Position numbers and translations under genes: made by a program. Of a stretch of 64,000 bases of DNA, positions 5,988 through 43,455 are shown piece after piece. How positions within the stretch are numbered: the first letter of the stretch is position 1; every line of letters begins with the position of its first letter. Source of the DNA: Corallochytrium limacisporum Hawaii (Eukaryota; Protista; Pluriformea); contig PDIP01000014.1 in NCBI GenBank assembly GCA_002811645.1, positions 121,633 through 185,632 on the forward strand. The letters are read 5' to 3'. The notes beneath the pieces were generated by a model. It was not told the DNA's origin and did no database searches. It worked only from the letters and a program-made list of their open reading frames with translations.

Positions 5988-6428
5988 ATGCGACCGACAC
6001 AGATTCTCAGAATTCAAGACTTGAAAGTGATGCCGGGAATTCTCCCTATCAAAAAATTAAGAGGAGCCCAGAAACTGGAGGTTCAGAGACAGGCGACGTT
6101 AAATCGGTGGAGACAAGCGCAACGAGAGCGCAACCCTCGACCGGTCGGTGTTCTCACAACAATAATTGAAGAGGCAGCTGCCAATGGAGGAGACTTGCCC
6201 GATGACCGAAAGTTTCTGCTGGACTGGGAACCTTTCCGTCGTCAATCACATGGCGTGCGCCCTCTGGCACAGGCAATTAAGTTTAAAGATCCAGAAAAGC
6301 GCCGCGTTGCAGATGATCAGTTGAGGGCATGGCATGAGAAGTACACTCCAAGATATGCCTTTGAGACTGAAGAAGAGGCACTTGCGAGGCAACCTCGTAA
6401 AGCACTTAAGGGTGACGAATATGATTAA
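5988..6428 (+). CDS. Small basic protein, probably mitochondrial; weak resemblance to mitoribosomal mL52
   Basis: 146-aa ORF with a good start context (tcacgATG), a presequence-like MRPTQILR and an AT-rich 3' flank. RWRQAQRERNPRPVGVLT...LPD loosely resembles the mL52 WR..QG...NP...GPLT.LPDW motif. Confidence 0.6.
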   Translation: MRPTQILRIQDLKVMPGILPIKKLRGAQKLEVQRQATLNRWRQAQRERNPRPVGVLTTIIEEAAANGGDLPDDRKFLLDWEPFRRQSHGVRPLAQAIKFKDPEKRRVADDQLRAWHEKYTPRYAFETEEEALARQPRKALKGDEYD

Positions 6429-9400: not shown

Positions 9401-11653
9401 GATTGCAGCGCATAACCAGTGCTGCAAAATGGCTTGTCCATCTTCCCTTCGGTTGGATCTTCCTCACCAACGTCAACATAGTGCCAAACAACCAGGCCCT
9501 TTCACGGGGTATGTTCTGTGATGAATCGTTCATCTTTTCCTGATGTTCCACTGTCTTCCAGAGACATTCCTTTTCCCTTTACTTCTCTATGTCTTCAATC
9601 GCGTTCAGCAGTACGGAGGTCATCTACTTCTTGTCGTCTTCTGTGGTTTGGACCCCAGCCAAAAAGTAGAAACTTGGGTACTCCTTTGCAATGACCGCGA
9701 GCATTGCAAAGCATGTAATAGAGAAGAAAACAGAGCGCAGGACAGGCTCAAAATCGAAACAACTGCGCGATCGTCCCGCGGGAGCTGGTAACACTTAGCA
9801 CATCTAAACGAAACCTGGGCACTGCGAAGAGCGAGCTGCACACAGCCGTGTTGACGAACACGCATACTATGTGTATGTGATGACGGCAGTACAAAATAAG
9901 TAGTTCCCTACGCAACATTGACACACAACAGTCCCTGTTGCGTGGGTCTGTTGCCCTCGGCTTCGCATGGTAGCCCTTGATCAGCAGATATGTCGTACCG
10001 TACGTATGCCCGTTTACTGGTTACCTGCCTGAAGTGGCCTTGAATGGGAGAGACATACAAACACCACTGAAATTCCTGAACGCAATTGGTTAGAAATTCA
10101 TATCTGAATATATTTCTAAGTACACTCATTGAAATGAGTAAATAGCATGCGGAGGATTGTCGGGTACCAAATCGTAGAGAAACAGTGCTGAAACGGATCG
10201 ACAAGAATTTGGTGACTCTATAACCATATGGCCCCAGTATTCATAAACAGGGTCTCTTTCCAAGACCTGAACAAATTTTCAACCTGGGTTTGGAGATATA
10301 CCACCAGACGGCCAGACGCTGATGTGATAATCTCTTACAGCGTAGGCCAATTTGGAAAATTCCTACGCTGGTTCAGTACGACAGTAAATTTGGGGGTGAT
10401 TCGGTCCCCCCCCCCGTGTAAGCGAGTCATTGCATTCCCGAGACATCGAAGGAAAACTCTAAGCAACCACCAATCAAGAACACAATGCATGAGTACCCCT
10501 GTGAAGAAATCATCATTGGATAGCACTACACTTTCTTGATATTGACCAATGTTCCAAATTACAGTGTACATCCTGGTTCAGATGCTATACGGTATTGAGG
10601 GGAGCCATCAGTGTTCAATGAAGAGACGACAGGCAGAGGGAATAGCCAGAGACTCGGTAACAATCCCTCGAAACCTGCTCATTGATCACCTACGCCACCC
10701 GTGCCTTCTAGCTGTGTCCCAGATGATGCCTTTACCTATTAACTCTCTATCTGTTTTTTTTTTCATTTTGCGATGTCCACCTTAGATGCGAAACGAATCC
10801 CATAGCTAGGCGGCTGGAAGCAGCTGTACAGGAACGGGCAACCTTGAAGGGCAAAGGAACATTCTTCCGACAAGCAGAGGAGCACTGAGAGGGTAGTGCG
10901 CTATTCATCCGTAGACTACGTGTATCGTGCTCACATCGTCTTTGAAATCCCCTAGGTGCATGTCATATCTAGCTTGCCATCTTCGTCGAGTCCAGCATAT
11001 TTGACAGCCTGTACCTACCGTATCCAATAACAAGAGGGTGATCTCGTTTACTGTTTAGAATGTTTAGCGGGTTAGAATTCACCGAAAGGCACATGCACAG
11101 CTCGCAGTGAACGACCGTACAAGGTATGGACGAAATTCTGGCGCGTGGCCAATTTGTGTGGCCCAGGAGACGGTCGCTGCGTTTTTTGGACGCCAAACCC
11201 TTTCCCCAATGAGTATTGTATGACTGACTGCATTAGTTGAGCCTACAAGCAGAAAGGGGGCCGAGAGCAAAAAGGTTTCCGTAGTTCAAAAGCACACACT
11301 ACTGGCTGAACGTGCGCCCATATGTTTTCCTGGCCAGACGAGCGGGTGATTTGCAATTTTGGAGTAGTCTGCGGAATTAGAAATTGTGATGAAAATTCAT
11401 ATGCCAAGAGCTTTTGGCCGCTCCAAGTCTAAGGGTCACCATTCATTTTTCTTCTTTTTTGCACGCCCGTTCACAGTAAGGTGGCCGCCCTCGATACTCT
11501 TCAATGGCTGAGAACGAGACCTCGTACCCAGTATACTTATGCACAAGAGTTCCATGGATCTGTGATCTATAGTTCTATTAGCTGATATAGGCATCACGAA
11601 CCCAGACGGGGGAAGAAGAACTTATTACCAATCTCTGCAATGAATGGACTTGG

Positions 11654-11677
11654 ATATATATATATATATATATATAT
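11654..11677. repeat. (AT)n microsatellite
   Basis: About 12 perfect AT units. Confidence 0.9.
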
Positions 11678-14600
11678 TTAAAACAATAGCGTCTCCTGTG
11701 CGGAACCCCACTGTAGTGACTTGTTCTGGGAAAAAGGGGCCGTACCGTGATGACATCCTACTCATTTCTTTCATTCTCTGCGCGTCCCACCGGCGTGTCT
11801 TTGTGCTTTGAGAGAAAGGAATACGAGAAAATCCCGTGTTTGGTTCCTCTTGGGTGCTCACATTGTTTTCTTTTTCTAAGATTTCTTATTTAGGCCTTTG
11901 TGAACTGTGAATGCTGTGTGATTTTCAAGGGAAATGATGCCAATCAACGATAGTGAATTGGATACATGAGAAGTCATACAGTAGCAACTCACAGTCATTG
12001 ACTGTGACAAGTCTCACCAGATAGATTGAGATCAATGCCACAGTTCAGAGTGCCAACGGCAAGTGGAAATGTATGGTCTCGGGGGGGTTCGTTTGTGGTT
12101 GGTGTGTCCCAAATTTAAATACAATTGCCAACGGCAAAATGGGAGGGAGGATGTGGGGAATTGTACATATGGCTGAGAATGACATCAGTTTTATCACCAT
12201 GCTAGAACATGCCTATATACTTGAATTCCTTGAACCCAACCGACAGCCCCGAGGAACAGCAACATCTCTGCGATACACTAAGGAATCAGGCGTGGTTGTG
12301 TAGTTAGTGTTGTTTCTCCGGTTCTGCTCGGGTGTGGTTCGAGAAGTGTCCACGTAGTGTGAGAGAGAACGACGTCTCCTGCCAAACTAACCGCCACGAC
12401 GACCGAGCGCAGTGACCATGGAGTTCCAGATTCTGCCTCTTTGTTGTCCAAACACACAAACCAAGAACCTGACATGTTAGTGAAAATAAAATCTTCGGTG
12501 AACCAGCGCTTTGTCGTCTAGCGATACCGAAGCGGTTTCTGTCGGATGGCTTCTTTCTGTGCTGGTCAAGTTTAGGAACGCGTTCCGGAACGTCTGCAAA
12601 TTCCTTTAAAGCCTCGGAGATGTGACCACGGTGTTGGTCCCGCATGATGCTAGAATTGTTCCTCTCATGTCAGAGTGACGAAGGAATGTGGAAATTCCGC
12701 TCACAAGAACTGCATGAATGATATTCACGATGTGTCATGGTTGAAATAGACCGCGGATTTCGACCCGTTCCCTTAGTATTCCACGCTCCATTACTGGGTT
12801 CGGATGACTGCCTATTGCCTCTTTATTTACAATAAACACCGACAAGCACGAAGAATGCAAACTAGAGAGATTCGATTGCACCACCGAGGGGTCCGTACAC
12901 CACAAAGATATGCGCACTGTATTGCGGGCTAGAAGTTCTAATGCAGACCTAGTTTCTGTGGGCTTTGGAAAAGTATGACTTGCTTTTTCGACATGCCACA
13001 TTTATACTATACCGGTCACGAAAAAGCCTTGTAATCTGCCTTTCGCCGTCGTCTCTAAACTGATCCGTACATTCTCTTGGTCTTACCGCCATGGCTCATA
13101 CAAGATGACCGCAACCCATACTATTGAATATCGTTTATCCGTTTAAGATTTTTTTCTCTTTGTATTACTCCGAACTGCTGGTAACCACCTCCTCAGTGAT
13201 TTTAGCCAGTCAATGATTGGCGTGTTTACCCGGTCTCCCCCTGCAACGGGCATAAGAAGCTGTCGACAAGTAAACTCAGGAATTCAGGGATTGGGTGGGG
13301 TCTGTGTGTCTCGGAGAGAAAACGCACACAAAGAGAAATATTGTGAGGGGCAATTTTTTTTTAGTATGTCTAATACGTCCGAGGGAAAGAACACCGCGAT
13401 TTTTGCACTATCGTTGGTCCCCATATAAGGCAACAAAAATTTGAACCTCCTAGCTGCTCTGGTTGACGAAGAACAGTGGCAAGGAGGACGAAAAGTGTAA
13501 ACAAGAACAAAATTCGAATAGAGAAAGATGAGTAATTTCTAAGTTTTTTTGAAACGCCAGATTTGAAACGAAGAGACAGCAAAGGACAGTATTCCTGAAA
13601 ATGCCGGGTGCATGAGTCGAAGTCATCGGTGAGTACGCAGAACCTGTACTGGATCGTATGATCAAAGTAGAGAAACGAAGAGGAGATTGCACACACTTTT
13701 TGTCCTCACAAAGAGCACAATTCCCGATCGATCTCGGCGCGATTGAAGTATAAGTTCTACTGACTCTATCTGTCACACGGTTTGGTATCTTTTGGGAAGC
13801 GAGCATGGGATGCTGGAGAAAATGTGTTGGAACGGGCTATTTTGAGAGATATTGCTGCGGCTGGGGCGACCAAGTTTTCTTCCACGCCGGGGTTGTCTTA
13901 ACCCCATTGCTTTGTTAAGTATTACACGATTCTGTCGTCGCGGTCAATAGTCCTGTAGTGTATATATAGTTGGTATTACCGACATGAACAAGAGACGACA
14001 AGCCAGTGATGATGCAGACCGTTCCATCCGCTGCCGAGCTCGTATGCAAGATCCAATTGGATCGCGAGAAGCCAGAGCAGTGTTCCTATTGGACATGGCT
14101 TGTGCATTTCCTTCTAGTTCCAACAGAATTATAATATGTATACGAGGAAATTGGGAGGAAGTGTTTTTTGCAAGCCGTCTAGCTGCGTTGTTGTTGAATC
14201 ATCAACGGGACATCTGCAAAGGTATGTGTAAGTTACCCGTCGGATGGTGTGACACAGGTTGCCTGTGGAGAGCCGGGTAGTTCCCTGCGCCGGTCTGACC
14301 AGACGCCCACAAGCATCTGAGACACAAGCACCTGACTTTTATAGCACGAGCTCTACAAAGAGACGAATTTCGGAGCCAAGGTCACACGAGGAGCACGCAC
14401 TCTCTCTGGACAAGAGTTGGTTGCGTCAATGGCGCATTGTCTGTTATCACTCGTTCGAGTCCAATGAACGCTTTGCACTACTTAACATTAATAGGTCATG
14501 ATTTTGTCCATGTAAAGACTTTGCACATCCACTAGTACGCATATCGTGAACAAGTCCAGCGGTCAATCAGATGAGGGGATGTCAGCCTACCACCGCCATG

Positions 14601-16373
14601 TTTGAAGGGAGAGTGTTGCGTGTGAACAATGCATGTCGCGTTCTTGGATGGGTACACTTCCGTACGGAAGACGGTGCAACGTCTCGCTTGTGTTAATGCT
14701 CCGGTAAGACTATGTTCCTTGTCTACCAGCCGACATTCACTCACCGACCAACCGTTCCGATGATAGCATCCGCGCTGTGAGCAGCCGACGTTGGACGCTG
14801 AGGATGGCCAGAGAGAGAGCGAGAAAGAGGGCGGAAGGACGCGCACCCGAGAGGGGGGAAGGGGGGAAGGGGAAAACGATGAGAAAGGCGCTGTCAAAAA
14901 TTGCACAGAAAAAGGAGCGGCGGGAATACACACCAGGAAGTGTCGACTTTTCGGGGTGAAACAAAAGGGAGCTCAGAAGTGGTCAATTTTGGTCCTAAGA
15001 AGACACAGCTGGTGGGCATTGAAGTTGCCTGCGGGTTGGTATGGTTTCCCGGGTGCGATAGAGGTAGAAGATGAGGAAGACAACACTGTCAACAAACGAC
15101 AAATTTATCAACAAATATCGAGTCGTATCCACAGGCTATTACTGTTGCGTGAGTCAATCTCGCATCCGAACGCCTTCGGTGGTGTGCACACTTTCTCTTC
15201 ACATGCTATACTAGTTGTTGCTAATTTGATTCGCACTGCAACTACCCCTTACTTTTGGGAAGCACCGTTTGCAGTGTTAGTAATGAATTTTTTCGTTGTC
15301 GAAGTGAGCCAAGCTTATTCACTTGTGCGTACATTTGTTATGGTTCTCAATATTGCATCAAGCTTAAGTGCTTAATCAAGGGGTAGGCTTAGTGTTTCCC
15401 AGATACTCTCTCCACCATGTTTGGTCTTTGGGTCAACTTACACCTCCTGCCTATGAGCAAATTCAAGCCCACACTAAATGCATATCAGTTCTGATAGCCC
15501 TACTGGAGTTTGGGGCCAGCAGATGTCCATTACGCAACTGCCAGAAACCGGAAAAGTCCGTACTCTTCCATCATATACTGTATGTACAACGCGAGGCATT
15601 CTACAGTTTGGTGGGAGGGGAAGCCCTATGAATCGTGCAAAAAAAATACAGCGGCAGAGAAGAAGGATGACGGAACCTCTTTTGGCCGGACCGGGGACCG
15701 GACCTTCATCAAGGACATGGATAGGGGGGGAATGGTGGGGGACATACAGGTCTGTCACATAGTGACAGTAGGACATCCAAACACTTACAACCCCCTTTTA
15801 TACTGTCAATATGTGGTCATGGTCATTCTTCATCCCACTGTGCTAGCGCTATCTTTCTGTTTCCCTTGTGTGCCTGCTGCCTGTTTTCCGAGGGATGATG
15901 ACGGGCGACGGCGGTGTGAGGTGAGGGAATGCACGGAGAACACTTGGCGGGGGGAACAGGCCTTGTTCTTCGGTATCTTTGGAGGATGGTAGTGCTGGGC
16001 ATGGCCTTCGGTGCAGTCGCGGAACCAAGACAGAGATTCGGAATCGTGGATGTCCGCCCCAAATATCCATGCATTGTTTTGACCAATGGCAGAACGCGTG
16101 CTCCTCGGCGTTTAGTACCTGAAGGCAAAGTCTGTCAGCATTTCCTGGGAGTCAATACTTGTTCACCCACAATGTCTATTGCAACACAGCTGCGGAGAAA
16201 TGTGTAGTAATCAGGCGAGTGGGTCAGATATAGATATAAATGTAGTATGTATATATGTAAGAAATATATGCTCGTGGCTCGAACTTCTCAACTGCTGTCG
16301 AGCTTTTTTTTTATGCGAGAAAAGGGGGAGGGGGGGGGGGGGTATAATTTTTGTATACGTCTGGCGACGCCAT

Positions 16374-17384
16374 TTAGACGTCGCGGAAGTAAATGACCAT
16401 CTTCAGGTCGCTCTTAGAGTCCGAAATGACCTTCTTGCGAAGACCACCGAGCTTCTCAACCTTCTGAGGCTTACCAGTGGGTCCAGTGCACAACTCAGCC
16501 TCCTTGTAGAGCATGGCCTTGCGGTTGTATTGCCAGTAGGAGTCCTTCCACAGGTAGCCATCAGTCCACCGGCGGATACCACTACTGGACTCGGCGTAGA
16601 CATAGCCAAAGCCGCCATCAATTTGGCTCCGCTCGACTTCATTCAGGCGAGCGTGAGTCAGGCGACATTCGCCCCGCCGGGCCATAGCGAAGATGTATTC
16701 CGCCTCAACATGGCCATTTACGTAGCCAAAGAAGGAGGCATTGCCGGGCACATCGCTCATGTTGGGTCCCAGGATCATGACCTTGCAGTCACTTTCGACG
16801 TACATCATGCTGGCGTCGCTGTTCTGCAGGAGTCCTTCGTACTTGGCAAGCACAGCTGGGTTCTTCCTAGCAATAGAAACAGATGAACTGCGAGTTGATG
16901 AGCGAGGCTCAGCAGTGTAGGTGGGAATGTGTGTTGAAGGATAAGTCATGCGAGTAGCATGATGAGGCAGGCGTACCATGCAAGCAGCCTGTACCAAGTC
17001 ATCGAGACGAGACTTCTTTGCCAGACTGTCGGTTTCCTCGTCGGAGCGCAAACGCTTCAGGGATGGTGAACTCACAGTAGACAGATCGTCGACCAGATCC
17101 TCAGTAGGAGGCATATCGCTCAGGCTGTGACGAAGTGTGTTAACGCTGCTCGGTACAGGGGAAATGTAGTCGAAGTTAGCGTACGAGTTCTGCATGTAGT
17201 AATCGGCAGAGGAATACCAGCTCTCATATCCACGAGGCTCGAAGTGAACGTCGTAGTTGTTGTACTGCTGTTGACTGTACTGCGGGTAGACATCGTGGGC
17301 AGGGCTGGGCTGAGCGGAGAGCTTCTGCTGCTCGGCAGCGGGAGATCCGCTCGTGGCGCTAGTGTGATCGTAGCCGAACTCCAT
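16374..17384 (-). CDS. Gti1/Pac2 (WOPR-domain) transcription factor
   Basis: The C-terminal ~120 aa (16374-16736) read SFFGYV...EAEYIFAMARRG...RLNEVERSQI..G.GYVYAESSSGIRRWTDG..W...LYKE...GGLRKKVIS...MVIYF. This matches the WOPR pattern FxGYV...RR....ER..I.SG..FV..E..SGIKRWTDG..W...YRE...GL.KKT.S...LVSYY. The N-terminus is Y/S/Q-rich with an NLS-like LKRLR...KKSR. Confidence 0.88.
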   Translation of the reverse strand: MEFGYDHTSATSGSPAAEQQKLSAQPSPAHDVYPQYSQQQYNNYDVHFEPRGYESWYSSADYYMQNSYANFDYISPVPSSVNTLRHSLSDMPPTEDLVDDLSTVSSPSLKRLRSDEETDSLAKKSRLDDLVQAACMVRLPHHATRMTYPSTHIPTYTAEPRSSTRSSSVSIARKNPAVLAKYEGLLQNSDASMMYVESDCKVMILGPNMSDVPGNASFFGYVNGHVEAEYIFAMARRGECRLTHARLNEVERSQIDGGFGYVYAESSSGIRRWTDGYLWKDSYWQYNRKAMLYKEAELCTGPTGKPQKVEKLGGLRKKVISDSKSDLKMVIYFRDV

Positions 17385-20800: not shown

Positions 20801-22571
20801 CGGGTCCAGAAACGCTCTAGCCCTTCAGCTACTAATTCCAGTACTTGATGGAGTGGATCATGGGGGTGTAATGTTGTCATGACAAGCCAATTTAACATTA
20901 TGTCCATGATCTGCGACAATCATATACAGATGCAGCATCCTCGTCGATAGTTGAGCGGAATATATTACTACCAAAACAAACTACAAGGAAACCGGTTGGC
21001 GCGATCAACATTTCTGTTGTACAACTGTAAACGGAAGATATAGTTCTTTAGAAGAATGGAACGGGGCCACCATCACCTTCAGGAGTCTACCCCCGGCCCA
21101 GAGGATCCATGCTTCTCAAAGAGAGGCCTATCGACCCGATTCTGAGTAGTGCGGTACGGGGACGAGAACTTAGTAGTAAGAGATGGGACACTCATAGAAA
21201 AACAATGCGGCTGGTGCGGAAACATAAGGGTCTGCAAGGAGCTACCCAGGAGATCAGTCACTATGAACACCATTGCTGTTGACATGGCTCCCGGCGGGTT
21301 TGAACCATGGTCGGTGCTCCTATGCTGTACTGTTCATGTACACACAGCAGTCAATCCTTCTCAACAGTCTAGTCTGCCTCATTCGATGCAGTAGATCTGG
21401 ACCCGAACCGGTGTCCTGGGACTGCAATCTCCTTTCATTGGGTCTCCAAAGCCAGATCTTAAGTTCTCTGGACTTCAAAGCCACAGCATGCTCTGTGTGA
21501 TACCGCTAAGTACAGTCTGTCCGAGCAGTTCACAAACCCGTCATGATAGGCAGGCACGCATTTGGTCCCCAACTTTAATGGCACTAGTCTACGCAAGATG
21601 CATTGCCTGCGCCAGAAGCTCTGTGCCGGTCATGCGCACCCCCTCTCATTCCCGGGCCTTTTCTCTGCTTCTTCGAATCACTCAGGATATTTCGCAGACA
21701 CCACAAAAAGGCCCTTGTATATTTACAGGCAACATTGATATTCAAGTTTCTACTACTTTTCCTCATTGATTTACTTCTGTGTGTGATGTGAATACTGCTA
21801 CGTGACTGCGTATTTCGAATCAATTGATTCCAAGGTGTTGATCAAAACATCTTTCGAAGTAGTTTCAGGGCAAATTGTGAGTGTTGACCCAGTGATGTTT
21901 TGGTTGGAGGCGAGGAGCACACCAAACGGGCGGAGTCGTAATACAATCGGTGAAGTGCCGGAAGGATGGGACGGGATTCGGGATGTTTTCTTTTGGTAGA
22001 GCCCCTGGGGTTGGATGGATCACGCTATGACGGCTGTTTTTGTGTTGTGGGCACTCTCATGCGGCCTGTCCACTGTGGCCCCTTGCTCCGCTTTCTTCGA
22101 CTGTAGATACTGACTACGTCTGCTGATCCAGCCCAAACTTTTATTTTGGTGGTTTTATTTTGTTTTCGGTTCTGGAACCCTATACACTCACTATAGTACG
22201 AAAAGGGGAGGTTCTTCCACATCATCGCCACAGTCCGGTGATGTTGACTCCACGCACAGCCCCATAAAAGTAAAAACTTCCGCAACTGTGTTTCTACACA
22301 CAGCTTCAATGGCCTTGCCCTTCTGGGGTGGGTGGGCTTCAGAAGGAGTGCAATGACCTTCATCGCTACTGTGATGGCACATCACACTCCTCGGGTTTAA
22401 ATCAGGTATTTTCTGGAGTCAGATACGCCACCTGAGTAGTATCCAAACGATTTTGATTGTAGTGGTCCCAGTCATTCGGATAGCATGTAATTATTGTGAG
22501 GTGGTCCCAAACAACTTAAGCAATGGTTTGAAATCTTTGAAGAGAGGACAAGTGACAGACCATTGGCTGCC

Positions 22572-25500
22572 ATGAAAATACTTTCCCTTGTCTTCGCCGT
22601 TCTCACCTGTTTGCAGGTGTCAACGGTTGTAGGTGTGAAGAAATGTGTAAATCGGCAGTGCACTTCACCAATTTCAGTTGCAAAGGCTCAAGCTCCATTC
22701 AGGACCAATGGAGCAACCGGATGGCTAGAGTTAGACGGGTCAGAGACTGTGATCATCTTTGGAAAGGATGAAGATCAAGGGATATGGGAAGCTAGTTTGA
22801 AAGGCAAGCGGGGTGCTGTGATGGCTGACACTGTCAAGGAAATCACGGTCTATCATCGAAAGCCTTCTGTTGTTGCCGATTGGAAAAAGAAGCCAGCAGA
22901 GCTAGACTTAAGTTTGAATACGGAAGCTGAGGACACGGAAGCAGAGAATACGGAAGCGGAGAACACGGAAGAGGAAAACACGGAAACGGAGAACACGGAA
23001 GTGGAGAATATGGAAGCGGAGGATGCGGGAGCGGAAGAACAGGATCTTGTAAAGGAAGAGACGACTGCGGAAGAAGTCCCGGAGAAGCATGAAGAAGAAC
23101 TTCTTCAGGAGCCTGTGGAGGAGGTCGCCGAATTGCCAAGTACCGATGATCCTGAAGGAACCGCAGAAAAGGATTCTGAACAGGCCGTTGTAGAGACACC
23201 TGAGGCCCTCGTAGAAGAGGTCACCGAAGTCCCCATTGGAGTAGAGCCACAGACCCACGCAGAAGAGGAGCTGGAGATGCCGACAAAAGATGCCGCTGAC
23301 CTTTCAGAAGAACATGGAGTGGACGATGTTGCGACTCCTGAGGTGGCAGCAGAAACTATAATGATGGAACAGGAGCTATCAGAACCCGAAATTGTAGCAA
23401 CAGATACCCAAGAGACAGACGCCCTCGACTCTGTGGACACGCATGCTGACGAAGAGGCATCGAATATTCGTATCGATGACATGGTCCTGGATGTTGACGA
23501 GCTGAAAGGTGCACAAGAGCTGGAGGAGGAGGATCTTGATTCTGAGAAGGAGTCTATCATAGCAGTGAACGACGAGCCGATGGAAGAAGCTGTTCCCGAA
23601 GTGGACACGACCAAGGAAGGGCCCATGATACAGGACAATACACTCGAAGGAGAGGGCGTGCGCGAGACTCTTGAGGCTGTTACTCCTCAACCGGATGATA
23701 CACATTCGGACCATGCAGTCCAACTTGAAGAGGTCCAAACACACGCTGCGCATGCAGCAGAAGACGCAAACGTAGAAGTTGAGACTAAGAGTGATGAACC
23801 TTTGAAAGATACTCCAGATAGCAGGACAGAGCGGCGGAAGAATAAGCGAAGAAAATATGGACAGAAGGAGCCAGTAGACACAGAGCAGGCTGCAAAGAAT
23901 CGGTCCACCGGCGACGAGGACAGTGGCGGCATCGACATCACGAATGTGTTGCAAAGTTACTTGTCTTTGGACAACTTGGAAGTCCCCATTAAGATGGTCA
24001 AGCAAGCATCTTTACAGTTTCAAGAAAACTTTGGGGTCGAAGACGAAGTCATCCTCTTTGGAGTTGTTCTTCTGGCAATGTCCTGTATGTCCATGCTGAT
24101 GCTAACCTGCTGCTGTTGTGGCGGATCGTCCTCTTCTGGATCGGCAGCAAACCAGATCAATCAACTCAAGGCACAGCTTGAGAAACGAGAACAGGAAGCG
24201 AGGCATGCGAACCAAATGTTATCTAAATTGAAGGCAAATCCTGGAAGCACGGCCCCCATTGCGGATGCTGCTGGAATGAATGGAGCAAACCCAGCTGAAG
24301 TTGCCGGTCTTCAGAATGAAGTACAGCATTTGAGAAATCAATTGGAAAACATGTCCCAGGGATACCAACAGGACATCCAGAGCAGAGACATGGCTTTGCA
24401 ACAGAAGGAAGCCATCATTGCGCAAAAGGACCAGGAACTTCAGGGATACTATCAGACATACGAATCGGAGAGAACTGAATTAGTCCAGCGGACAGAGGAA
24501 GCAGAAGGCGCTCGCGATGGTCTTGAGAGACAGATTGGCGACTTGCAGTATCTCCTGGACGAAGAAAGAAAACGATTCAGAGACAAGGAAGAAGAATTCG
24601 AGTCGCTGAAGATCCACACAGACACATATACTAAGATCAATCAGGCTCTGAAGGTGATCGAAGCCAAGAATGAGGAATTGGAGTCAAAGTGGATTACTGA
24701 GGTCAGGGCTAAAGAAGCTGCCAAGGACCGCGTCCTAGAATTGCAATCAACTGTAAAGAGCCTTGAACATGAGGTATCTGCCCTAATGAAGGAGCGGGAG
24801 CAGAAGGAAACATCATCCTTGACAGATATTCGCGATGAAGCTCGAGAGATAGAATTTGCAAAGATGTCGAAGAAGCTTCAAGTTCTTGAAGAATACTTTG
24901 CCGAAGACACGAATGCTGGTGGTAAGCATAAGGACGCTAAGCAATTGCGTATGGAAATGGCACAAGTTGTGGAAGAGAATGCTGAGCTTGGGAAAAAGCT
25001 TGAAAAGGCCAAGGAAACCCAATTCCATGCAGAGGATAGGATGAAGAAGGCTCATCAAGAAGCTGATCAAAAAGCGTTGAAGGTCGACATGCTGGAAAAT
25101 GAAATCCGAGCGAAACAGGAACGCCTGGACACACTAGAGCAGTACTTTGAGGATGCTCTGGCTCGCCACAGACGCGAGACTGAAAAGCATGTCAAAGAAA
25201 TCGAAAAACTAGAAACTCTTGGAGCTAATCAGGAGATGGAAATGAATGAGGTCCGTGAAGAACTGGAGAAGAGAACCGATGACCTCAATGTCTTGACAGA
25301 AGATTACGTAGAGGTCAGAAACAAATACCAGGAACTGGACATTGATGTACAAGGTAAGGCGTCCCAGATCTTTACTCTGCAAAGTGAATGCGAGGAAGCG
25401 AATGAGAGGTTGGAAAAGACAACTTTAGAATTGGCTGACACGAGGGCTCACGTTGAGGACCTTGAGGGCAAGGTCGAAGAGTTCAGAGTATATAGTGAGG

Positions 25501-26804
25501 AGCTCGAACAGACGTACAACACGGAGAAGGATCGAGCGGATGGACTTGCTGCTGAATTGCATGAAACGGAGTATATCAAACAGGAGCTTCAAGAGAACGT
25601 GTCTGGTCTGCGTCGAAAGTTGGCGGAGCAGGATCGCATTATTCGCAACGTACAGAATCAGAATAGGGAACTTCAGCAGCAAATGAAGCAGCAACCTATG
25701 CAGAACAATGGAGTGACGGGGCAACGTGCCCAGATGGGCCAACGCCCAGTGCTCGCTCGCCCAGGAGCCGCCCCTGGAATGGGGACACTGAAGCGTCCGG
25801 GAGGTACTGGGCCGATCCCTACTGGTTCAACTCCGCAACGACCAGGAGGGGGACCCAGACCCACCATGGGTAATGGCCTCCAACCAAGAACTTCACATGG
25901 TACTGGAGATCACACCAGTAGAATGGGTGCAGGTGGCCATCAACGGTCTCCTTCCGGAGGCGGTCATCAACGGGCTCCTTCGGGAGGCGCTCCAAGGCCA
26001 CAATCTGGTGGCCCTCAGCGCCCCGGTCCTCAGCGGCCCGGTCCTCAGCGATCTTCCGCAGGCCCTCAGAGGACTCCCTCCATCAGTGGCGCACCAAATT
26101 CGGGGCCGCGGGCCGGTGTGGGAGCACCAAGTGGCCCAGGTACTCACCAGCCTGGACAATTAGCAAGTACCCCAATGGGATCCACGACGGCTGGACCACG
26201 GTCAGGTCATCCGCCGTCTCCTCGCGGTATGAATATCAGCACAGATTCACATGCTGCGGGAATTGCCTCCCAGCCAAGAGCGCCAGGCTCCCGCCCAGGA
26301 TCCCGTCCGTCCTCAGCTCAAGGTCACTACCGTCAGCTTGGCCCTGGCCCCCATGGCCAGCGATCCCGAAATCCGTCTCAAAGTGAACCTGCCGGTCACC
26401 CTACACCTCCTCTGAATCTCCCAGAAGCCACGGGCTATCAAGACATGCCAGCACCTGTCCCTTCCTCCAGTGAAGTTCAGGGCCCGGATGAACAGATACC
26501 ACAGACTCACAGCCAAGAGAATGCGGAGACTCAGGAAGATGAGCCAGACATGGACCAGGACTATGGTAAAATGACTGCTGTCCAACCGACAGCTCCACCG
26601 CCCGGTGCGATGACAAACCCATTCGCAAGGCCAACGATAACACCGAGGGCAACCACACACAAGCGCGAGCGTGTCCGTATTATGCCGAACAACAACCAAC
26701 CGATCATCAAGAGGGATCCCAACCAACCACAGGCCAGACCGGCACCGAAGCCGACTAATGTACCACCTCCGCCTACCGGTGATGGAGGAGGAGATTTCCT
26801 GTAA
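22572..26804 (+). CDS. TANGO1/MIA3-like ER-exit-site cargo receptor (signal peptide, MIA/MOTH SH3-like domain, acidic lumenal region, TM, coiled coils, proline-rich tail)
   Basis: Signal peptide MKILSLVFAVLTCLQVSTVVG. Then KKCVNRQCTSPISVAKA...WLEL...TVIIFGK...IWEASLKGKRG...VKE, matching the MIA-family K.C.D.EC..PIS...A...L......V.V..K.....W.G...G..G pattern. About 370 aa of E/D-rich sequence follow, then TM VILFGVVLLAMSCMSMLMLTCCCC, about 520 aa of coiled coil, and a G/P/R-rich tail with PPP motifs. Start placed at the ATG at 22572. Confidence 0.85.
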   Translation: MKILSLVFAVLTCLQVSTVVGVKKCVNRQCTSPISVAKAQAPFRTNGATGWLELDGSETVIIFGKDEDQGIWEASLKGKRGAVMADTVKEITVYHRKPSVVADWKKKPAELDLSLNTEAEDTEAENTEAENTEEENTETENTEVENMEAEDAGAEEQDLVKEETTAEEVPEKHEEELLQEPVEEVAELPSTDDPEGTAEKDSEQAVVETPEALVEEVTEVPIGVEPQTHAEEELEMPTKDAADLSEEHGVDDVATPEVAAETIMMEQELSEPEIVATDTQETDALDSVDTHADEEASNIRIDDMVLDVDELKGAQELEEEDLDSEKESIIAVNDEPMEEAVPEVDTTKEGPMIQDNTLEGEGVRETLEAVTPQPDDTHSDHAVQLEEVQTHAAHAAEDANVEVETKSDEPLKDTPDSRTERRKNKRRKYGQKEPVDTEQAAKNRSTGDEDSGGIDITNVLQSYLSLDNLEVPIKMVKQASLQFQENFGVEDEVILFGVVLLAMSCMSMLMLTCCCCGGSSSSGSAANQINQLKAQLEKREQEARHANQMLSKLKANPGSTAPIADAAGMNGANPAEVAGLQNEVQHLRNQLENMSQGYQQDIQSRDMALQQKEAIIAQKDQELQGYYQTYESERTELVQRTEEAEGARDGLERQIGDLQYLLDEERKRFRDKEEEFESLKIHTDTYTKINQALKVIEAKNEELESKWITEVRAKEAAKDRVLELQSTVKSLEHEVSALMKEREQKETSSLTDIRDEAREIEFAKMSKKLQVLEEYFAEDTNAGGKHKDAKQLRMEMAQVVEENAELGKKLEKAKETQFHAEDRMKKAHQEADQKALKVDMLENEIRAKQERLDTLEQYFEDALARHRRETEKHVKEIEKLETLGANQEMEMNEVREELEKRTDDLNVLTEDYVEVRNKYQELDIDVQGKASQIFTLQSECEEANERLEKTTLELADTRAHVEDLEGKVEEFRVYSEELEQTYNTEKDRADGLAAELHETEYIKQELQENVSGLRRKLAEQDRIIRNVQNQNRELQQQMKQQPMQNNGVTGQRAQMGQRPVLARPGAAPGMGTLKRPGGTGPIPTGSTPQRPGGGPRPTMGNGLQPRTSHGTGDHTSRMGAGGHQRSPSGGGHQRAPSGGAPRPQSGGPQRPGPQRPGPQRSSAGPQRTPSISGAPNSGPRAGVGAPSGPGTHQPGQLASTPMGSTTAGPRSGHPPSPRGMNISTDSHAAGIASQPRAPGSRPGSRPSSAQGHYRQLGPGPHGQRSRNPSQSEPAGHPTPPLNLPEATGYQDMPAPVPSSSEVQGPDEQIPQTHSQENAETQEDEPDMDQDYGKMTAVQPTAPPPGAMTNPFARPTITPRATTHKRERVRIMPNNNQPIIKRDPNQPQARPAPKPTNVPPPPTGDGGGDFL
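22918..23037 (+). repeat. Coding 15-bp tandem repeat (NTEAE-like pentapeptide, about 8 units) in the TANGO1-like lumenal domain
   Basis: aatacggaagctgag/gacacggaagcagag/aatacggaagcggag/aacacggaagaggaa/aacacggaaacggag/aacacggaagtggag/aatatggaagcggag... Confidence 0.9.
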
Positions 26805-26887: not shown

Positions 26888-28213
26888 TCAGCCGATGCTG
26901 GGTATCGTTTGATCGCTGTCAGAATTGCTATCGGGACGAAGAGTAATTTCAACTTTTCCTGCGGGCACGGTACTTAGGATCTCACCCGCCAGGCTAACTG
27001 GCAAACCACACAAAAGATGACCATTTACAGCGAGAACTTCCGAACCCGCATGAATGTTCCCGGATCCAGCAACAATGCTACCCTCGCGCACCTGCACAAT
27101 CAGAGGACCTTCGCGCTCAGGATCATCCTTGAGGGCAAGGCCAATAGAAGCTCCATCATAGGGCAAAGTTAAAGTTACTGTTCGACGTTCGCTGGCCGGC
27201 AGAGTAAGGCAAGCGAATTGTTTGACACGCTGGGCTAAGTTACTGCACTGCAGCATGATGTCGTCACTGTTGTCCATGATAGACTGGGAATCAAAGGCAA
27301 AGGCTGCTCCAATCAGTTCCTTGCTTGCCGAATCGATCTCTTTACGCAGAAGTGCAATGTTGCCACTAGTCGCCGGATGAGCGCACACAGCGTTCATCAG
27401 GTCGACAATTTCCTCGGTAATGGCCAAAGCGTCCTGCGAGAAGTGGTCTTTATCCAACTTCTGCAGATGGGTAGCTACTTCGGGTGCCACTTCATAGCCA
27501 GGGGTATCGAGGTTTACCTTCTCTTGAGCCTCCGCGGCTAGTGTGAGTAGATCCATATGGATGGTATAGGCTAGCCTTCCGATAGTGAGGTGCTCAACAG
27601 CACACATAATGGTATCCAGTCTGTTCTCGTCTATGCTCTCCCAACGATTTATCAGAGTCTTCTCATCCATTTCCAGCAACTTACAGCCATTTACACCTGC
27701 ATCTATGAACTTGATATGGATGCAATCGGGGACTGCATAAAGGCTTCGTAGGAAGTCACCAACCTGGTCGGGAGACCACCGCTTCACCTCAGTGGAATCC
27801 AAATGGACCCGATCCTTTGCGGCCTTCATGTTAATATTCTTTTCCTCGGGACCCTTCTCATCACCAAAGTTCAACTCCACCGCGCACGCAAAGGCACTGG
27901 CGAGAGTACGCCGATGTTCTCCGTTAAAAAATTTGTTCCTTTGCAAGTCTCCTTCCAGGAATGAAACCGTAGACTCAACGGTGAAGGAACCCGTAGACAG
28001 AACGCTCACACCAGATCCGGTCTTCAGAGTGAGTTGGCTCAACTGCAAGTTATTCAATCCCAGACTCCGGTGACGCAGAGGCATAGCACGGAAAGACGTA
28101 TCTGAACGAACAGGCGCCGGAAAATCGCTGTCCTTGGAGTTGACGCTAGCACTGCTATCAACTCCGCAAGCATTGGGCTCGATTGAGATTACGGGCGCCC
28201 GAAGATCTGTCAT
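26888..28213 (-). CDS. CNK (connector enhancer of KSR)-like SAM-CRIC-PDZ scaffold lacking the PH domain
   Basis: SAM: VKRWSPDQVGDFLRSL...VNGCKLLEM...IMCAVEHL. CRIC-like helices: FSQDALAITEEIV, LRKEIDSASKEL, DIMLQCSNLAQ. PDZ: SIGLAL...NIHAGSEVLAVNG..LCG. Order and spacing are colinear with the CNKSR N-terminus as I recall it. Confidence 0.78.
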   Translation of the reverse strand: MTDLRAPVISIEPNACGVDSSASVNSKDSDFPAPVRSDTSFRAMPLRHRSLGLNNLQLSQLTLKTGSGVSVLSTGSFTVESTVSFLEGDLQRNKFFNGEHRRTLASAFACAVELNFGDEKGPEEKNINMKAAKDRVHLDSTEVKRWSPDQVGDFLRSLYAVPDCIHIKFIDAGVNGCKLLEMDEKTLINRWESIDENRLDTIMCAVEHLTIGRLAYTIHMDLLTLAAEAQEKVNLDTPGYEVAPEVATHLQKLDKDHFSQDALAITEEIVDLMNAVCAHPATSGNIALLRKEIDSASKELIGAAFAFDSQSIMDNSDDIMLQCSNLAQRVKQFACLTLPASERRTVTLTLPYDGASIGLALKDDPEREGPLIVQVREGSIVAGSGNIHAGSEVLAVNGHLLCGLPVSLAGEILSTVPAGKVEITLRPDSNSDSDQTIPSIG

Positions 28214-30833: not shown

Positions 30834-33611
30834 TCACTCTTTGGTTAAAGATGTGTTTTGCAAATTTGGCTGGATCAGACCATGGTTGACAAGTGCATCG
30901 AGAGACTGTTGGATCAAACCCTGAATGTCATCACGGTCCTTCAGGAGCTGCTGAACCGCTAGCAACATCTCCAACCCCTGTTGATCAAGGAAGGAACTTG
31001 CAAATGTGTTGTCAGCCACTAAAACATTTCGTAGAATGTACAGACCACGGTGTTGGAGGTCAGCACTATCTGATTGGATAAGGCCAATTATGGTCTCTAA
31101 GGTCCTTGGATCAGCGCCTACCAGCACGGCGCCTTCTTTGATACCACTCAGCATGGCTACTCCACCACTAGCAGCGCGCGCCATTTCGACCTCTTCTGCT
31201 CCCGAAAATAGCAGCCACAAATGGATTTTAGAAGACGATGGTGGATCAGCGGCTTTGGATTGTTGTAAGTACCGCTCGACAACAGTATCATCGATAAGCA
31301 AATTGCACAATGCCTCAGTCGCAGCAGTTTGTATCTTTGGGTCTTCGTCAAGTTGTAGGTTCTCACACAGTGGTAGACCGTTCTCTGCGAGGATTTTTTT
31401 GCGCAACTCATCGCTTAGACTTGCAAGATTGGTTAGGGCCATGAGGCCTTCGAATTGTAGGAGCCGATGATTCTCAATGTTTAGCAGGGTCAGTAAAGGC
31501 CGGATCAGGTCAAGAGTTCGTCCGTTAGGAAAGGCAACATTGGGATCCATGCTAATGCAAACCTTGGCTAGCGCTTGGGCAACACAAGTCTGGGTCTCCT
31601 TTGCTTCAGAAGAGTGCAACAGGGTCAAGAGTGCGCGAGTTCCCCCCTGCTGAACAAGATAACCACGATGCTCAGGCTGACGCGCCACACGGTGCAAGAT
31701 AAGGGCTAACATTTGTTTCATATTCTCAGAGGACACGTCAAGGCTGAGATTGTACAGAATGGAAACGAGATGCATCTGCATAAGTCTATCGATACGAGCA
31801 TTGATTTTCGCTGGGTCATCCGCTGGCCCCTTCTCCACCACTTGCTCACCAGCGAACTTCCGCAGCTGTTGAACCTGCTCTTCTTCTTCGCTCTTACCAA
31901 TCTCCGACTCTGATGCATTTGTAAGGTTGAGAAGCAACATTCCAATCGCGTACTTCTGTGCCCCATCATTCTCCACCGAGAACCTTTGAAGCGCCGAAAT
32001 AACCTCAGTTTGGTCTATCAGGCGCTCCTTCACATCCCCATCCATAGACAAATATGCCAAGGCTTCGAGAGCCCACCGTCTGGCTGCTGCGTCGTCGGAT
32101 CGGTTCTTCGGATCTTCGTCCTCCTTGACGCTGTTTTGATGGTGTCGGATCAGAAGGTCTACAGCTGACTGCTCTAATTGTTGATTCACGTCACCAGAGA
32201 GAAGCTGTTTGCTTGGATCACCCTCTGCGAGACTCGACAGCTTTGAAAGTGCAATCAAAGCGCGAGATCGAATGGCTTCATTCTCATCGTTGATTAACAC
32301 CTTCAGCAAATCACCAGCTTCACCCAAGAAAACGGAAGTCCTGGACTTATCTTTGCTCACTGCATGACTGAGAGTTTCTGCAATTAGACTTTTGTCTTCT
32401 TCTTCTCCTCCCGCCATCAGGTTTTTCATCACATTGATTACCATTGTGGTATCATACAGTGACGTGTTAACAGCTGGCAGGCCTTGGATGCCAACGTCTA
32501 ACATGCGCAAGAACTTCGCTCCAGCATCTAGCTGTCCATTCTCAGCATCCTCTTTCACTCTTCCCAGACAGTACCGAATGTGGTCCAGGAATTCTTCCTC
32601 CTTGTCAAGCTCATTGGCCGGGCCGTGTAAACGGAAAAGAATGAAAGCCAATGTGTGCCGGAGTGTGCTATCCCCTACCTCTGCTTGTTTCATGACGGCA
32701 AGAATAGTGTTGAAATTGTAGAACAATGGTACTAGTTTCTCCTTGGATGTGCATGATGCAATGCAAGCCATTGAATTTTTCCCACTATCTTGCACAGCAT
32801 TCTCTGCCATGTTTGTGAGTTCCTTGATGGGCCCTTGTAGTGCTACTGGTGATCGCCCGCATGCCACCCAACCAAGCAGATACGCTTGCAACGTGAACTC
32901 ATATGCCACTGTAGCACTTTCGCCATTCTTACCTTCCCGGATGCCGCTCAACAGAGAGTCCACGGAGACTGTGTCAAGTACTGATTCCCTGCAACTGGAT
33001 TGCTCTAGCAGTGCACGTAGACCGCGCAGAGCATAGGGCGCAAAGTTGCCAAAAGGTTCGCGCTTCAAAGAGTCCGTCAGCACCTCAATACCTCCAGCTG
33101 ATTGAAATTTCGCACTCAGGCCATCATTGTGGCATATGGGAAGGATCTGTTGTCCGACAGTCTCTGCATCGGCCAAACTTATGTCGTCCTTTTTAATCTC
33201 CTTGATGATATCGTCATATTTGTTCTGGGCATTAATTGCCTTTACCCTATCCATCAAGGCCGTCGCAGCAGGATTGTTCGGCTCAAGAGCTATCAACCGT
33301 CGTAGATCGTCTAGTCCTCTTTCAAGATTGCCAACTTCCACATTGGCAGAGGCCCTGTAGTATAGAGCCTTCTTGTCACTGTTGTTTGAATGCAGGACGG
33401 TTGAGGCATCCGCAATAGCGTCCTCGTAGCTGTGCTTCTTCAGTTGACAAAGAGCTCGGTTCCTGTGCAAAGTCTGCTTTAGATCCTGTGTACAGTCTTT
33501 CTGCTGCAGGGCAGCTGTGTAACATTGGACAGCATCCGCCAGTTTCCCTGCAGAATATGCTTCGTTGCCTAGCGCCTTGAGACGTTCAGCCTCTGTACTG
33601 GCCTGCACCAT
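30834..33611 (-). CDS. UNC45: UNC-45 myosin chaperone (TPR + central + UCS domains)
   Basis: N-terminal TPRs (LKALGNEAY, HRNRALCQLK, KALYYRA). Central/UCS motifs ALEALAYLSMDGDVKE, RGYLVQQGGTRALL, AQALAKVCISMDPNVAF, LLQFEGLMALTNLAS, AATEALCNL, RAASGGVAML, LQHRG. Confidence 0.95.
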   Translation of the reverse strand: MVQASTEAERLKALGNEAYSAGKLADAVQCYTAALQQKDCTQDLKQTLHRNRALCQLKKHSYEDAIADASTVLHSNNSDKKALYYRASANVEVGNLERGLDDLRRLIALEPNNPAATALMDRVKAINAQNKYDDIIKEIKKDDISLADAETVGQQILPICHNDGLSAKFQSAGGIEVLTDSLKREPFGNFAPYALRGLRALLEQSSCRESVLDTVSVDSLLSGIREGKNGESATVAYEFTLQAYLLGWVACGRSPVALQGPIKELTNMAENAVQDSGKNSMACIASCTSKEKLVPLFYNFNTILAVMKQAEVGDSTLRHTLAFILFRLHGPANELDKEEEFLDHIRYCLGRVKEDAENGQLDAGAKFLRMLDVGIQGLPAVNTSLYDTTMVINVMKNLMAGGEEEDKSLIAETLSHAVSKDKSRTSVFLGEAGDLLKVLINDENEAIRSRALIALSKLSSLAEGDPSKQLLSGDVNQQLEQSAVDLLIRHHQNSVKEDEDPKNRSDDAAARRWALEALAYLSMDGDVKERLIDQTEVISALQRFSVENDGAQKYAIGMLLLNLTNASESEIGKSEEEEQVQQLRKFAGEQVVEKGPADDPAKINARIDRLMQMHLVSILYNLSLDVSSENMKQMLALILHRVARQPEHRGYLVQQGGTRALLTLLHSSEAKETQTCVAQALAKVCISMDPNVAFPNGRTLDLIRPLLTLLNIENHRLLQFEGLMALTNLASLSDELRKKILAENGLPLCENLQLDEDPKIQTAATEALCNLLIDDTVVERYLQQSKAADPPSSSKIHLWLLFSGAEEVEMARAASGGVAMLSGIKEGAVLVGADPRTLETIIGLIQSDSADLQHRGLYILRNVLVADNTFASSFLDQQGLEMLLAVQQLLKDRDDIQGLIQQSLDALVNHGLIQPNLQNTSLTKE

Positions 33612-33984: not shown

Positions 33985-35643
33985 TCATTTCGATCGGGAC
34001 TGCTGGGCCAAGTACACCGCAATGGCAGTCAACAGGGACTTCCGGGGGAAAGGTGATGTACCAGAGCGGTCTTGAATGGCGGCATCGAGTGCCATACCCC
34101 AATGGTGCTGATTAAGAATGGCAATTGTTTTCGCATTGAATGGTTCTTGCGCAGGGTTCAAGGCCTTGTGAAGAGCGTGGTTGATAAAGCAGCTCCGGGC
34201 CATTCCAATCTGACTGTCGTTGCACTCCTGCCCACTTGTGCGAAGGAGTTGGTAATACAGATTCCGCAGTGTCACAAAGTCCACCGATTCTGATCGATAA
34301 ATGCCCACATTTGTGTTCATCTGGTGGACGTTGCCAGGACTGTAGGTGGGTTCGCCCATAGTGGCGGCCAAGCCTAGGTACTGAACATCTGTAGGAACAG
34401 TGTGCTGCTTCCAGAAGTCCAGTCGACTCTCCGTGGTTAGCGAGTCTGCGCCTGCGATGACAGCATTCACAAAGACTTCAAGGCGGTCAACGTTTTCACC
34501 ATACTCCTTTAAGGGGTTGGCGAAATTGAATTGCTTTACCATGAACTCGCTGAGCATTGTCAGCAGGGGCGATGCCCGTGGCACTGAGACAGACCATTCC
34601 TCATAGTTGAAACCGCGCTCTTCAGGAATGCGAATGGTTGTCAGCTTGCCCATTTCCACAACCGCAGATCCACCGCTCTTCATGAGTCCCATGAGGGCGC
34701 TACGCTTGCTTCCAGTGTCATATTTTTCTGCACTCTTCTTCCACTGTGCGACAATTTCCCGCAAGGCTTCAATGACACGATATGAGAATTCGTCTTCATT
34801 GTTAAAAGCAACATCTGCGGCCTCTGCACCATACAATGGGCCCCCAAGACTCACAATCGACTTCACCTGTGTTGACCATGGGTACTTACCAGCGTCTGCA
34901 CGGCTCTTCGCGAGGACCTCAAATGCCGTGTTGACGCCCCTGGAATAGCCTAGAAAGTGCACTGGGTGATCACTAGAAAGCGAGAGAACATCGAAAATGA
35001 TATTCAAACGACGTAGAAGTCTTTTACACAGTGTCCCCATATCCCCGAGGGACTCCAGTGACCCCAACACCGGACGGAGGTGTACCAACTTGACTATTGT
35101 CAGATCACCCTCGTCAAGACTGGCAACATCGAGAATGCTTTCGAGAGGGACTTCGTCCTCTGCGCATTTGTCGAGGTTGAACAACAAATCCGTTACATTC
35201 CCTTTGGCTGCAAGCTTTTCCTTGAACTCAATAGCAAATCGACTGTTCGCTCTTGCAGGGCCCTTCACAATGCTAGAAAAGGGACAGGTATCAACAAACT
35301 CTGCTACTACACCTGGGAATATGATAATGAGTGGTGCTGCCTCGTACGAAGGAATGGCACTCGCAATGAGAGTTTGTCTATCTCCAGATTGCTTTTCCGT
35401 TCCGCGATCTGAACCCTCCCGCCACAGTTGACCAGGAGTAATCTTTTTGTACGCCTTGCCGATGGAACTATCAAATTCTGAAGGGCTGCTGGCCTTCGCA
35501 GCCAAGATTGGATCTTGCACAATGTCAACAAGATCCTGTGTGGGTAGGAGCAACAGATCCTCTACAGCTGCCTTGACGTCATCGCCTTTCACAGCGTTGA
35601 ACAAGTTCCGAAAGGAGTTGACTTCCTCTGTATTCATCACCAT
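33985..35643 (-). CDS. Alpha/beta-hydrolase fold lipase/esterase-like protein
   Basis: Oxyanion-type IIIFPG, nucleophile elbow HFLGYSRG, SIVSLGGPLYG, candidate catalytic Asp in NDSQI and His in HHWG. Confidence 0.75.
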   Translation of the reverse strand: MVMNTEEVNSFRNLFNAVKGDDVKAAVEDLLLLPTQDLVDIVQDPILAAKASSPSEFDSSIGKAYKKITPGQLWREGSDRGTEKQSGDRQTLIASAIPSYEAAPLIIIFPGVVAEFVDTCPFSSIVKGPARANSRFAIEFKEKLAAKGNVTDLLFNLDKCAEDEVPLESILDVASLDEGDLTIVKLVHLRPVLGSLESLGDMGTLCKRLLRRLNIIFDVLSLSSDHPVHFLGYSRGVNTAFEVLAKSRADAGKYPWSTQVKSIVSLGGPLYGAEAADVAFNNEDEFSYRVIEALREIVAQWKKSAEKYDTGSKRSALMGLMKSGGSAVVEMGKLTTIRIPEERGFNYEEWSVSVPRASPLLTMLSEFMVKQFNFANPLKEYGENVDRLEVFVNAVIAGADSLTTESRLDFWKQHTVPTDVQYLGLAATMGEPTYSPGNVHQMNTNVGIYRSESVDFVTLRNLYYQLLRTSGQECNDSQIGMARSCFINHALHKALNPAQEPFNAKTIAILNQHHWGMALDAAIQDRSGTSPFPRKSLLTAIAVYLAQQSRSK

Positions 35644-42816: not shown

Positions 42817-43455
42817 AGTGTGTTGATACAATATCCGATATTTTTCTTTTTAAGAATTCACATTGCAGCTAAACTGAATCTCCCGGCTTACCGATCAAGG
42901 TCTTGAACCGCATCAAGCTGCAGGTACTGTCACACCATCGCTAGTGATACGAGAGTGGCCAAGGGGTCCAAAGTACCCCCAGGGCCCACTAGCTCCCCCT
43001 GGGCGGGGGTTGGCCTGGGAGTTCCCACTGTCTCGGAACCCATAACACAAGGCGGTTAGTGAGACTGTGATTACACTAATCAATATTTTCAAATTGTTTA
43101 ATTCTTTTTCCCCCACCGGAAAAACTGAGGCTATGGTGGCTGCTTCGTAAAAGTTACCGGCCAGGCGTTTTACTATCGGCCTGAAGGTACGATTTCGCGC
43201 CCGCTTCCCCACCACCTCTGAAACCACGGCCGCAGCGCAACGGTTGCACGAACCGCGCCTTAGCAGGGAAAGGTCGTGGAGCTCCATATTTCAGAAATAT
43301 GGTACTGGTATATGTCGCTGTTAAGCACTGTCTGTACCGAGTGAGATATACTAAAGTGTACCGGCTTCGACCCAAATGATATTACCATGAGATGCGACAC
43401 ATACGCAGTGCGTGAAACAGACATGACATGATCCGTTCGCATGTAAGTGATCACA

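Follow-up and report, generated by a model that had tools for sequence, protein, structure and literature searches.

Is TANGO1 confined to animals? The family, which is linked to the export of bulky cargo, collagen included (PMC10119292), has been described as metazoan-specific from 2017 to September 2026 (PMC5461033, PMC7594496, PMC7829582, PMC13723486). A preliminary description of the DNA considered here had said as much, and the literature bears it out; it nevertheless proposed that a complete TANGO1-like receptor for bulky cargo is encoded in an apparently non-animal, intronless genome. The DNA is a stretch of 64,000 nucleotides (hereafter the window) from Corallochytrium limacisporum Hawaii (assembly GCA_002811645.1, contig PDIP01000014.1, positions 121,633 to 185,632), and the gene in question lies at 22572-26804 on its plus strand. 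The host is, as had been surmised, no animal: C. limacisporum is a unicellular holozoan, and not a fungus either. In our judgement the gene is, with reasonable probability, a full-length member of the TANGO1 family (MIA3/MIA2/Tango1/TNGL-1) that has been inherited vertically, has diverged strongly and acts as a general scaffold of endoplasmic reticulum (ER) exit sites. This is a new TANGO1-family candidate in a lineage said to lack the family. Searches of open-access full texts brought up no report of TANGO1 in a unicellular holozoan; subscription papers and database annotations lay outside their reach, so a prior mention is possible.

The gene is a single open reading frame (ORF) of 1410 codons with no internal stops. 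Every part of the layout proposed in the preliminary description is seen in it: signal peptide, SH3-like domain, acidic spacer, one transmembrane segment (TM) followed by CCCC, coiled coils, and a tail with PPP and NPF motifs. The features are as follows.

22467-26752, plus strand: unspliced cover by probable-RNA contigs (single contigs from two runs).
22572-26804, plus strand: single-copy ORF for a predicted TANGO1-like type I membrane protein of 1410 residues (ORF list; a singleton cluster in EukProt; one match in the assembly by sequence search of the genome).
22572-22634, plus strand: predicted signal peptide, residues 1-21 (hydrophobic residues 3-21, KD19 hydropathy 2.15; cleavage placed by eye).
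22638-22688, plus strand: MIA/MOTH-type N-terminal extension K-x-C-x4-C-x2-P-I-S-x-A-x-A, residues 23-39, with the pair C25/C30 (gap-free alignment to MIA).
22674-22844, plus strand: degenerate SH3 barrel, residues 35-91, with YDY, GxFP, PxNY and the second-disulfide Cys absent (Pfam, AlphaFold, alignment).
22887-23801, plus strand: acidic lumenal spacer, residues 106-410, 35% D/E, probably disordered (composition).
23802-23906, plus strand: basic lumenal patch, 34% K/R, with an N-glycosylation sequon at residue 443 (composition and sequence).
23922-24026, plus strand: amphipathic helical stretch ahead of the TM, residues 451-485 (hydrophobic moment 1.0-1.36).
24048-24119, plus strand: single TM, residues 493-511 (24048-24104, KD19 2.57), then CCCC, residues 513-516.
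24126-25700, plus strand: cytosolic coiled coils, residues 519-1043, with heptads to residue 1040 (heptad analysis, ESM Atlas).
25701-26801, plus strand: Gly/Pro/Arg-rich disordered tail, residues 1044-1410 (19% P, 16% G, 10% K/R).

Hydropathy, on which alone the signal peptide was called, gives only two clear peaks along the protein, at residues 3-21 and 493-511. The second places the TM mid-chain, and this position, together with the lumenal SH3 domain, is unlike the terminal-anchor golgin or kinectin/p180 type: golgins are anchored C-terminally, kinectin and p180 N-terminally. The signal stretch reaches a KD10 value of 2.74, against at most 1.15 for the other host SH3 ORFs with a start inside the loci analysed, and a signal-like N-terminus was seen in none of the other host SH3s with a visible ORF start. 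A lumenal SH3 domain has been called ‘exceptional’ outside the TANGO1 family (PMC7829582). The stretch ahead of the TM is amphipathic rather than hydrophobic, and is a candidate counterpart of the intramembrane helix described for TANGO1 (PMC11876584); the CCCC that follows the TM may be palmitoylated. Within the acidic spacer there is a 15-nucleotide tandem repeat (22916-23041). In the coiled coil a motif LExYF-[AE]-[ED] occurs twice, at residues 772 (24885-24905) and 855 (25134-25154), 83 residues apart, with flanks that do not align significantly to each other. The tail holds PPP at residue 1342 (26595-26603), NPF at 1349 (26616-26624) and PPPP at 1398 (26763-26774); the PPP motifs noted earlier are thus present, as two tracts only, beside a single NPF.

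What kind of SH3 domain does the lumenal part contain? The N-terminal domain (84 residues) is matched by the Pfam model SH3_2 with an E-value of 0.003, below the curated cut-off, and is the weakest of the 44 SH3 matches in the host genome. AlphaFold predicts a barrel at residues 35-91 with a core pLDDT of about 90, a Z score of about 10 and a root-mean-square deviation of about 1 Å to SH3 structures; because its input alignment consisted of 34 ordinary SH3s only, the fold match is partly circular, the model biased and the lid beyond its reach. The extension aligns to human MIA (1hjd/1i1j, PDB sequence alignment) without gaps, with 8 identities in 17 positions and both Cys in register, and the gap-free alignment runs on into the start of the SH3. 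Six identities in 13 extension columns would arise by chance with a probability of about 3e-5, for approximate background frequencies and columns picked post hoc. A Cys pair at this position is missing from all 30 other host SH3s, and C25 and C30 are the sole Cys of the mature lumenal part, in agreement with the N-terminal CxxxxC pair of the preliminary description. The three polyproline-binding signatures, YDY, GxFP and PxNY, are all missing, whereas at least one survives in every one of the 30 other host SH3s. The Cys of the second, vertebrate-type disulfide, which tethers the C-terminus to the RT loop, are absent from the domain sequence; that disulfide is also absent in invertebrate Tango1, so its lack is no bar to family membership. 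Invertebrate Tango1 has the extension with the first disulfide only and has lost binding to polyproline II (PPII) (PMC10119292), and judging from its residues our domain shows the same state, with one putative disulfide and the PPII residues lost. Of the MIA/MOTH-type domain proposed earlier, the SH3 fold, the Cys extension and the loss of PPII residues therefore stand; the lid strands beta1 and beta7, which would cover the barrel, are hypothetical.

The two halves of the protein were also compared with the ESM Atlas, where scores below 0.9 are leads and scores are not calibrated for parts of proteins. With the N-terminal domain as query a TANGO1 cluster ranked first at 0.89, a lead only. With residues 450-1045, which leave out the SH3, a TGO1 cluster came first (0.91, 171 of 256 features), followed by two MIA2 clusters (0.88 each, 167 and 163 features); HMMR, CCDC30, RABE1 and RRBP1 lay behind with at most 128 features, the best unrelated cluster scoring 0.86 and RRBP1 ranking 26th. 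On these comparisons TANGO1/MIA appears to be the best family assignment for the lumenal domain and for the TM with the coiled coil, and to that extent the proposed TANGO1 identity is upheld, although no significant alignment accompanies it.

Among described systems, Drosophila Tango1 is likewise a single gene with a signal peptide, a one-disulfide SH3-derived cargo domain without PPII residues, a TM, coiled coils and a Pro-rich tail, and is of similar length (about 1430 residues against 1410); compared by description, the Corallochytrium protein differs in its two PPP tracts near the very end, its NPF motif and a host without detected collagen IV (PMC10119292, PMC7829582, PMC5715762). Caenorhabditis elegans TNGL-1 has diverged beyond BLAST, with the same modular order and two PPP motifs; it has demonstrated exit-site localisation and vitellogenin as cargo (PMC11841073), whereas no vitellogenin-type gene was found in the host of the gene described here. 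From the human family (TANGO1 (MIA3), TALI (MIA2), and the MOTH domains of MIA and otoraplin) come the gap-free alignment partner of the Cys extension and the TGO1 and MIA2 clusters at the top of the Atlas; in the host, by contrast, no second disulfide, HSP47-type serpin or cTAGE5-like paralog was found, and the PPP tracts number two against seven (PMC5461033). The domain order is that of TANGO1, TALI and TNGL-1. Canonical cytosolic SH3s (myosin IB, CIN85, beta-PIX) share the barrel with a Z score of about 10 and give the best raw sequence scores, but the domain described here differs from them in lying behind a signal peptide, in its Cys pair and in the lack of YDY, GxFP and PxNY.

How might such a protein work? 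Each step of the following scheme is carried over from animal work (PMC11876584, PMC5461033, PMC7594496). With its signal peptide and one TM, the protein would be a type I membrane protein of the ER. At ER exit sites its cytosolic coiled coils would self-associate; the disordered tail would bind Sec16 and, weakly via the two PPP tracts, the gelsolin domain of Sec23, and the membrane-proximal coil may help to tether Golgi-side membranes. In the lumen the one-disulfide MOTH-type domain, on its long acidic leash, would make low-affinity contact with cargo or adaptors. The chief task of the protein is probably to organise exit sites in general and to couple ER and Golgi, as a general-scaffold role is known from flies (PMC7829582), with the handling of collagen a later animal co-option. 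TNGL-1 gets to exit sites without its PPP motifs (PMC11841073).

The host has candidate partners. Sec23 is encoded in its genome, as are two more proteins with a Sec23/24 trunk. The Sec23 ORF (917 residues; L040:1149-3902, G000:C18) has a zinc finger beginning at residue 204, so that translation from the first ATG would give it a long N-terminal extension. Its gelsolin region is close to that of human Sec23A: of the four residues that we take to have a role in PPP binding, F628, Y672 and F681 have retained equivalents, and Y678 is replaced by His. A protein of 1715 residues with a central Sec16 domain, disordered arms on both sides and no match to the N-terminal propeller is read as Sec16, and RINT1 was also found. 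Since Sec23, Sec16 and RINT1 are pan-eukaryotic, their presence means compatibility only.

Cargo is another matter. Among the genes that the preliminary description had named as informative, Sec16 was found in the host genome, whereas a cTAGE5-like paralog (sequence search of the genome with the TANGO1-like ORF), an HSP47-type serpin and collagen were not. The serpin search had no host match with working controls; the models for C4 (collagen IV), vitellogenin, VWD, P4HA-N, NBAS and Sec39 also had none, with controls that were silent or weak, so these are weak negatives. Both Pfam collagen matches and the inspected Gly-X-Y pattern matches proved to be low-complexity repeats, and the only (GPP)n run lies on the opposite strand of a Pro/Gln-rich ORF without a signal peptide. 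The proposed role as a bulky-cargo receptor is consequently the weakest step of the preliminary description, with collagen, C4, vitellogenin, VWD, serpin and P4HA-N all unmatched; with neither collagen nor lipoprotein cargo detected, a general exit-site scaffold is likelier than a dedicated bulky-cargo role. Some small membrane proteins came to light. Two adjoining small membrane proteins (L041:268-708 and 1452-2165, minus strand) have a common Cys-rich N-terminus, and a 9-residue Gly-Gln-Pro repeat in one of them gave a false collagen match. Two small predicted type I membrane proteins (L194:988-1956 and L195:2412-3008) carry a signal peptide and, ahead of the TM, long Gly-Gly-Asp repeats; they are possible surface proteins and candidate secretory cargo.

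Is the gene itself sound, and does it belong to this genome? A single probable-RNA contig from run X3 covers 22470-26704 with no differences and no joints, and one from run X4 covers 22467-26752 with 14 differences and no joints. The RNA status of both 2015 runs is a guess by the search program, and contig ends are not transcript ends; both contigs are gap-free, reach hardly past the gene and fit one unspliced transcript in their extent. The genome is nearly intronless, much as had been supposed: the intron density published for C. limacisporum is 0.0 per kb of coding sequence (PMC5560861). All 14 sites at which X4 differs from the window lie inside the ORF, none of them in the N-terminal domain or TM, and 10 of them alter a residue, mostly within disordered parts. 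Two near-identical strains carry the gene (DNA run 2017, probable RNA runs 2015). The assembly comprises 24,109,830 bases in 286 contigs; its one p53-family ORF has 623 residues and a computed pI of 5.71, and the published C. limacisporum p53 protein has the same length and a pI of 5.50 (PMC6981761), the gap probably being due to a different calculator. Short contigs of a 2025 marine metagenome are identical to window positions 22286-22501 and 23219-23478, so C. limacisporum or a near-identical strain occurs in that sample.

Several results weigh against placing the gene in the TANGO1 family by descent. No homolog with a significant E-value was found with the N-terminal domain in full-length candidates, with the coiled coil or with a short N-terminal piece, even though EukProt was included. 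Only multi-SH3 proteins and repeat artefacts match among 1.84 billion representative sequences, phmmer with the coiled coil returned generic coiled coil and no TANGO1/cTAGE5 homolog, and neither a protein query of metagenome contigs nor a search for encoding contigs gave a homolog. The extension pattern, back-translated from the window's own sequence, was also sought in metagenome contigs; 80 loci were checked among the matches listed, and all were chance. A second unicellular carrier was not found in these sequence searches, and vertical descent is assumed. The whole match to MIA has an E-value of 0.46, non-significant alone, and canonical SH3s outscore MIA. The modelling and fold search suggested in the preliminary description returned the SH3 barrel, but the top matches, from a query based on the SH3-only alignment, were ordinary SH3s with no MIA or TANGO1 structure among them. 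In the model from that alignment the termini have a pLDDT of 50-64, with the extension at about 50; a single-sequence model of the domain reaches 43. Pfam NPIP, which is common in the TGO1 cluster, has no match in the coiled-coil part, although no control matched either, and both Atlas searches come from one model that may see the whole protein, so they are supporting evidence and not proof. A human fragment with two PPP tracts barely binds Sec23 (PMC5461033), from which weak binding is predicted here. Blank searches are not proof of absence and are not fatal to membership, because TNGL-1 was likewise missed by BLAST, and only HHpred and domain order led to its recognition (PMC11841073).

How else could the gene have arisen? 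In sequence and in fold alike, the lumenal domain finds its best matches among ordinary SH3s, those of myosin IB and CIN85 for example, and the coiled coil matches generic Pfam models only, as might be expected if, by convergence or as a chimera, a cytosolic SH3 had moved behind a signal peptide, gained a Cys pair and become fused to a TM with coiled coil of generic type and a low-complexity tail. Such a protein could serve, for example, in surface adhesion, in endocytosis or as a Golgi/ER tether, and the NPF motif would fit the endocytic option, since NPF motifs are typical EH-domain ligands. We regard this origin as doubtful: the in-register K-x-C-x4-C-x2-PIS extension, the complete order of domains and, separately, the Atlas preference of the TM with coiled coil (171, 167 and 163 features against at most 128) would all have had to arise together, and the mid-chain TM speaks against a golgin- or kinectin-like tether. 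If a processed animal gene had been acquired by horizontal transfer long ago, for instance from a cnidarian, the protein would be a true TANGO1, still at exit sites, but would not date the family. The host lives in coral-reef lagoons, the sequence searches revealed no other unicellular carrier, and the layout is the complete cnidarian/bilaterian one, whereas in sponges the annotation divides these parts between two proteins (PMC7829582). On the other hand, no detectably close animal sequence exists among the 1.84 billion representatives, and fast divergence hid the nematode TNGL-1 too. The composition also matches the neighbouring genes: G+C content (0.52) and codon-use correlation (0.45) are inside the range of twelve neighbours, with a third-position G+C content of 0.49 at its low end. 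Missing introns are uninformative on this point, as the whole genome is nearly intronless. Transfer thus seems unlikely, and animal contamination or mis-assembly has a negligible chance: the gene lies together with its flanks in one genomic DNA contig at a depth of 779, it occurs in both strains and a WOPR gene is its neighbour, so the metazoan contig feared in the preliminary description is excluded. We accordingly retain the diverged, vertically inherited TANGO1 as the preferred explanation.

The neighbourhood has features of its own. A Gti1/Pac2 (WOPR) domain (E 6e-17, Pfam) lies C-terminally in a 336-residue ORF at 16374-17384 on the minus strand; this fungal-type regulator in a holozoan is divergent from the TANGO1-like gene, with about 5.2 kb between them. 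On the other side a minus-strand ORF (26888-28213) with weak SAM and PDZ matches in CNK-like order ends 83 nucleotides from the TANGO1-like stop codon, and UNC-45, with N-terminal TPR, central and ARM regions, follows at 30834-33611 (minus strand). A 976-residue ORF at 43447-46377 (plus strand), with a faint ARID match only (E 0.08), is possibly a diverged ARID1/SWI1-type subunit. Two minus-strand ORFs have no firm Pfam match, one of 500 residues at 3173-4675 and one of 552 residues at 33985-35643; the latter has a faint match to LCAT-type hydrolases and adjoins a patatin lipase gene. From about 4700 to 16370 nearly 12 kb of this compact genome hold no ORF above 200 residues except an antisense frame at the WOPR gene, with a lower G+C content (0.45-0.50).

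In conclusion, we lean towards an origin of TANGO1 in the last common holozoan ancestor, before there was collagen export. The protein would have been of full length from the start, its one-disulfide MOTH domain linked by then to TM, coiled coils and PPP tail, and would have served as a general ER-exit-site scaffold; orthologs that have gone unrecognised would survive in other unicellular relatives of animals. Stable transfection of C. limacisporum is possible (bioRxiv 10.1101/2020.11.12.379420), which brings the claims on localisation and binding within experimental reach. If the assignment is true, the origin of TANGO1 would go back to early Holozoa, uncoupled from collagen, and the lumenal domain would be a new early intermediate between SH3 and MOTH. 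It would also bear on the dispute over whether TANGO1 is a dedicated bulky-cargo receptor or a general organiser of exit sites.

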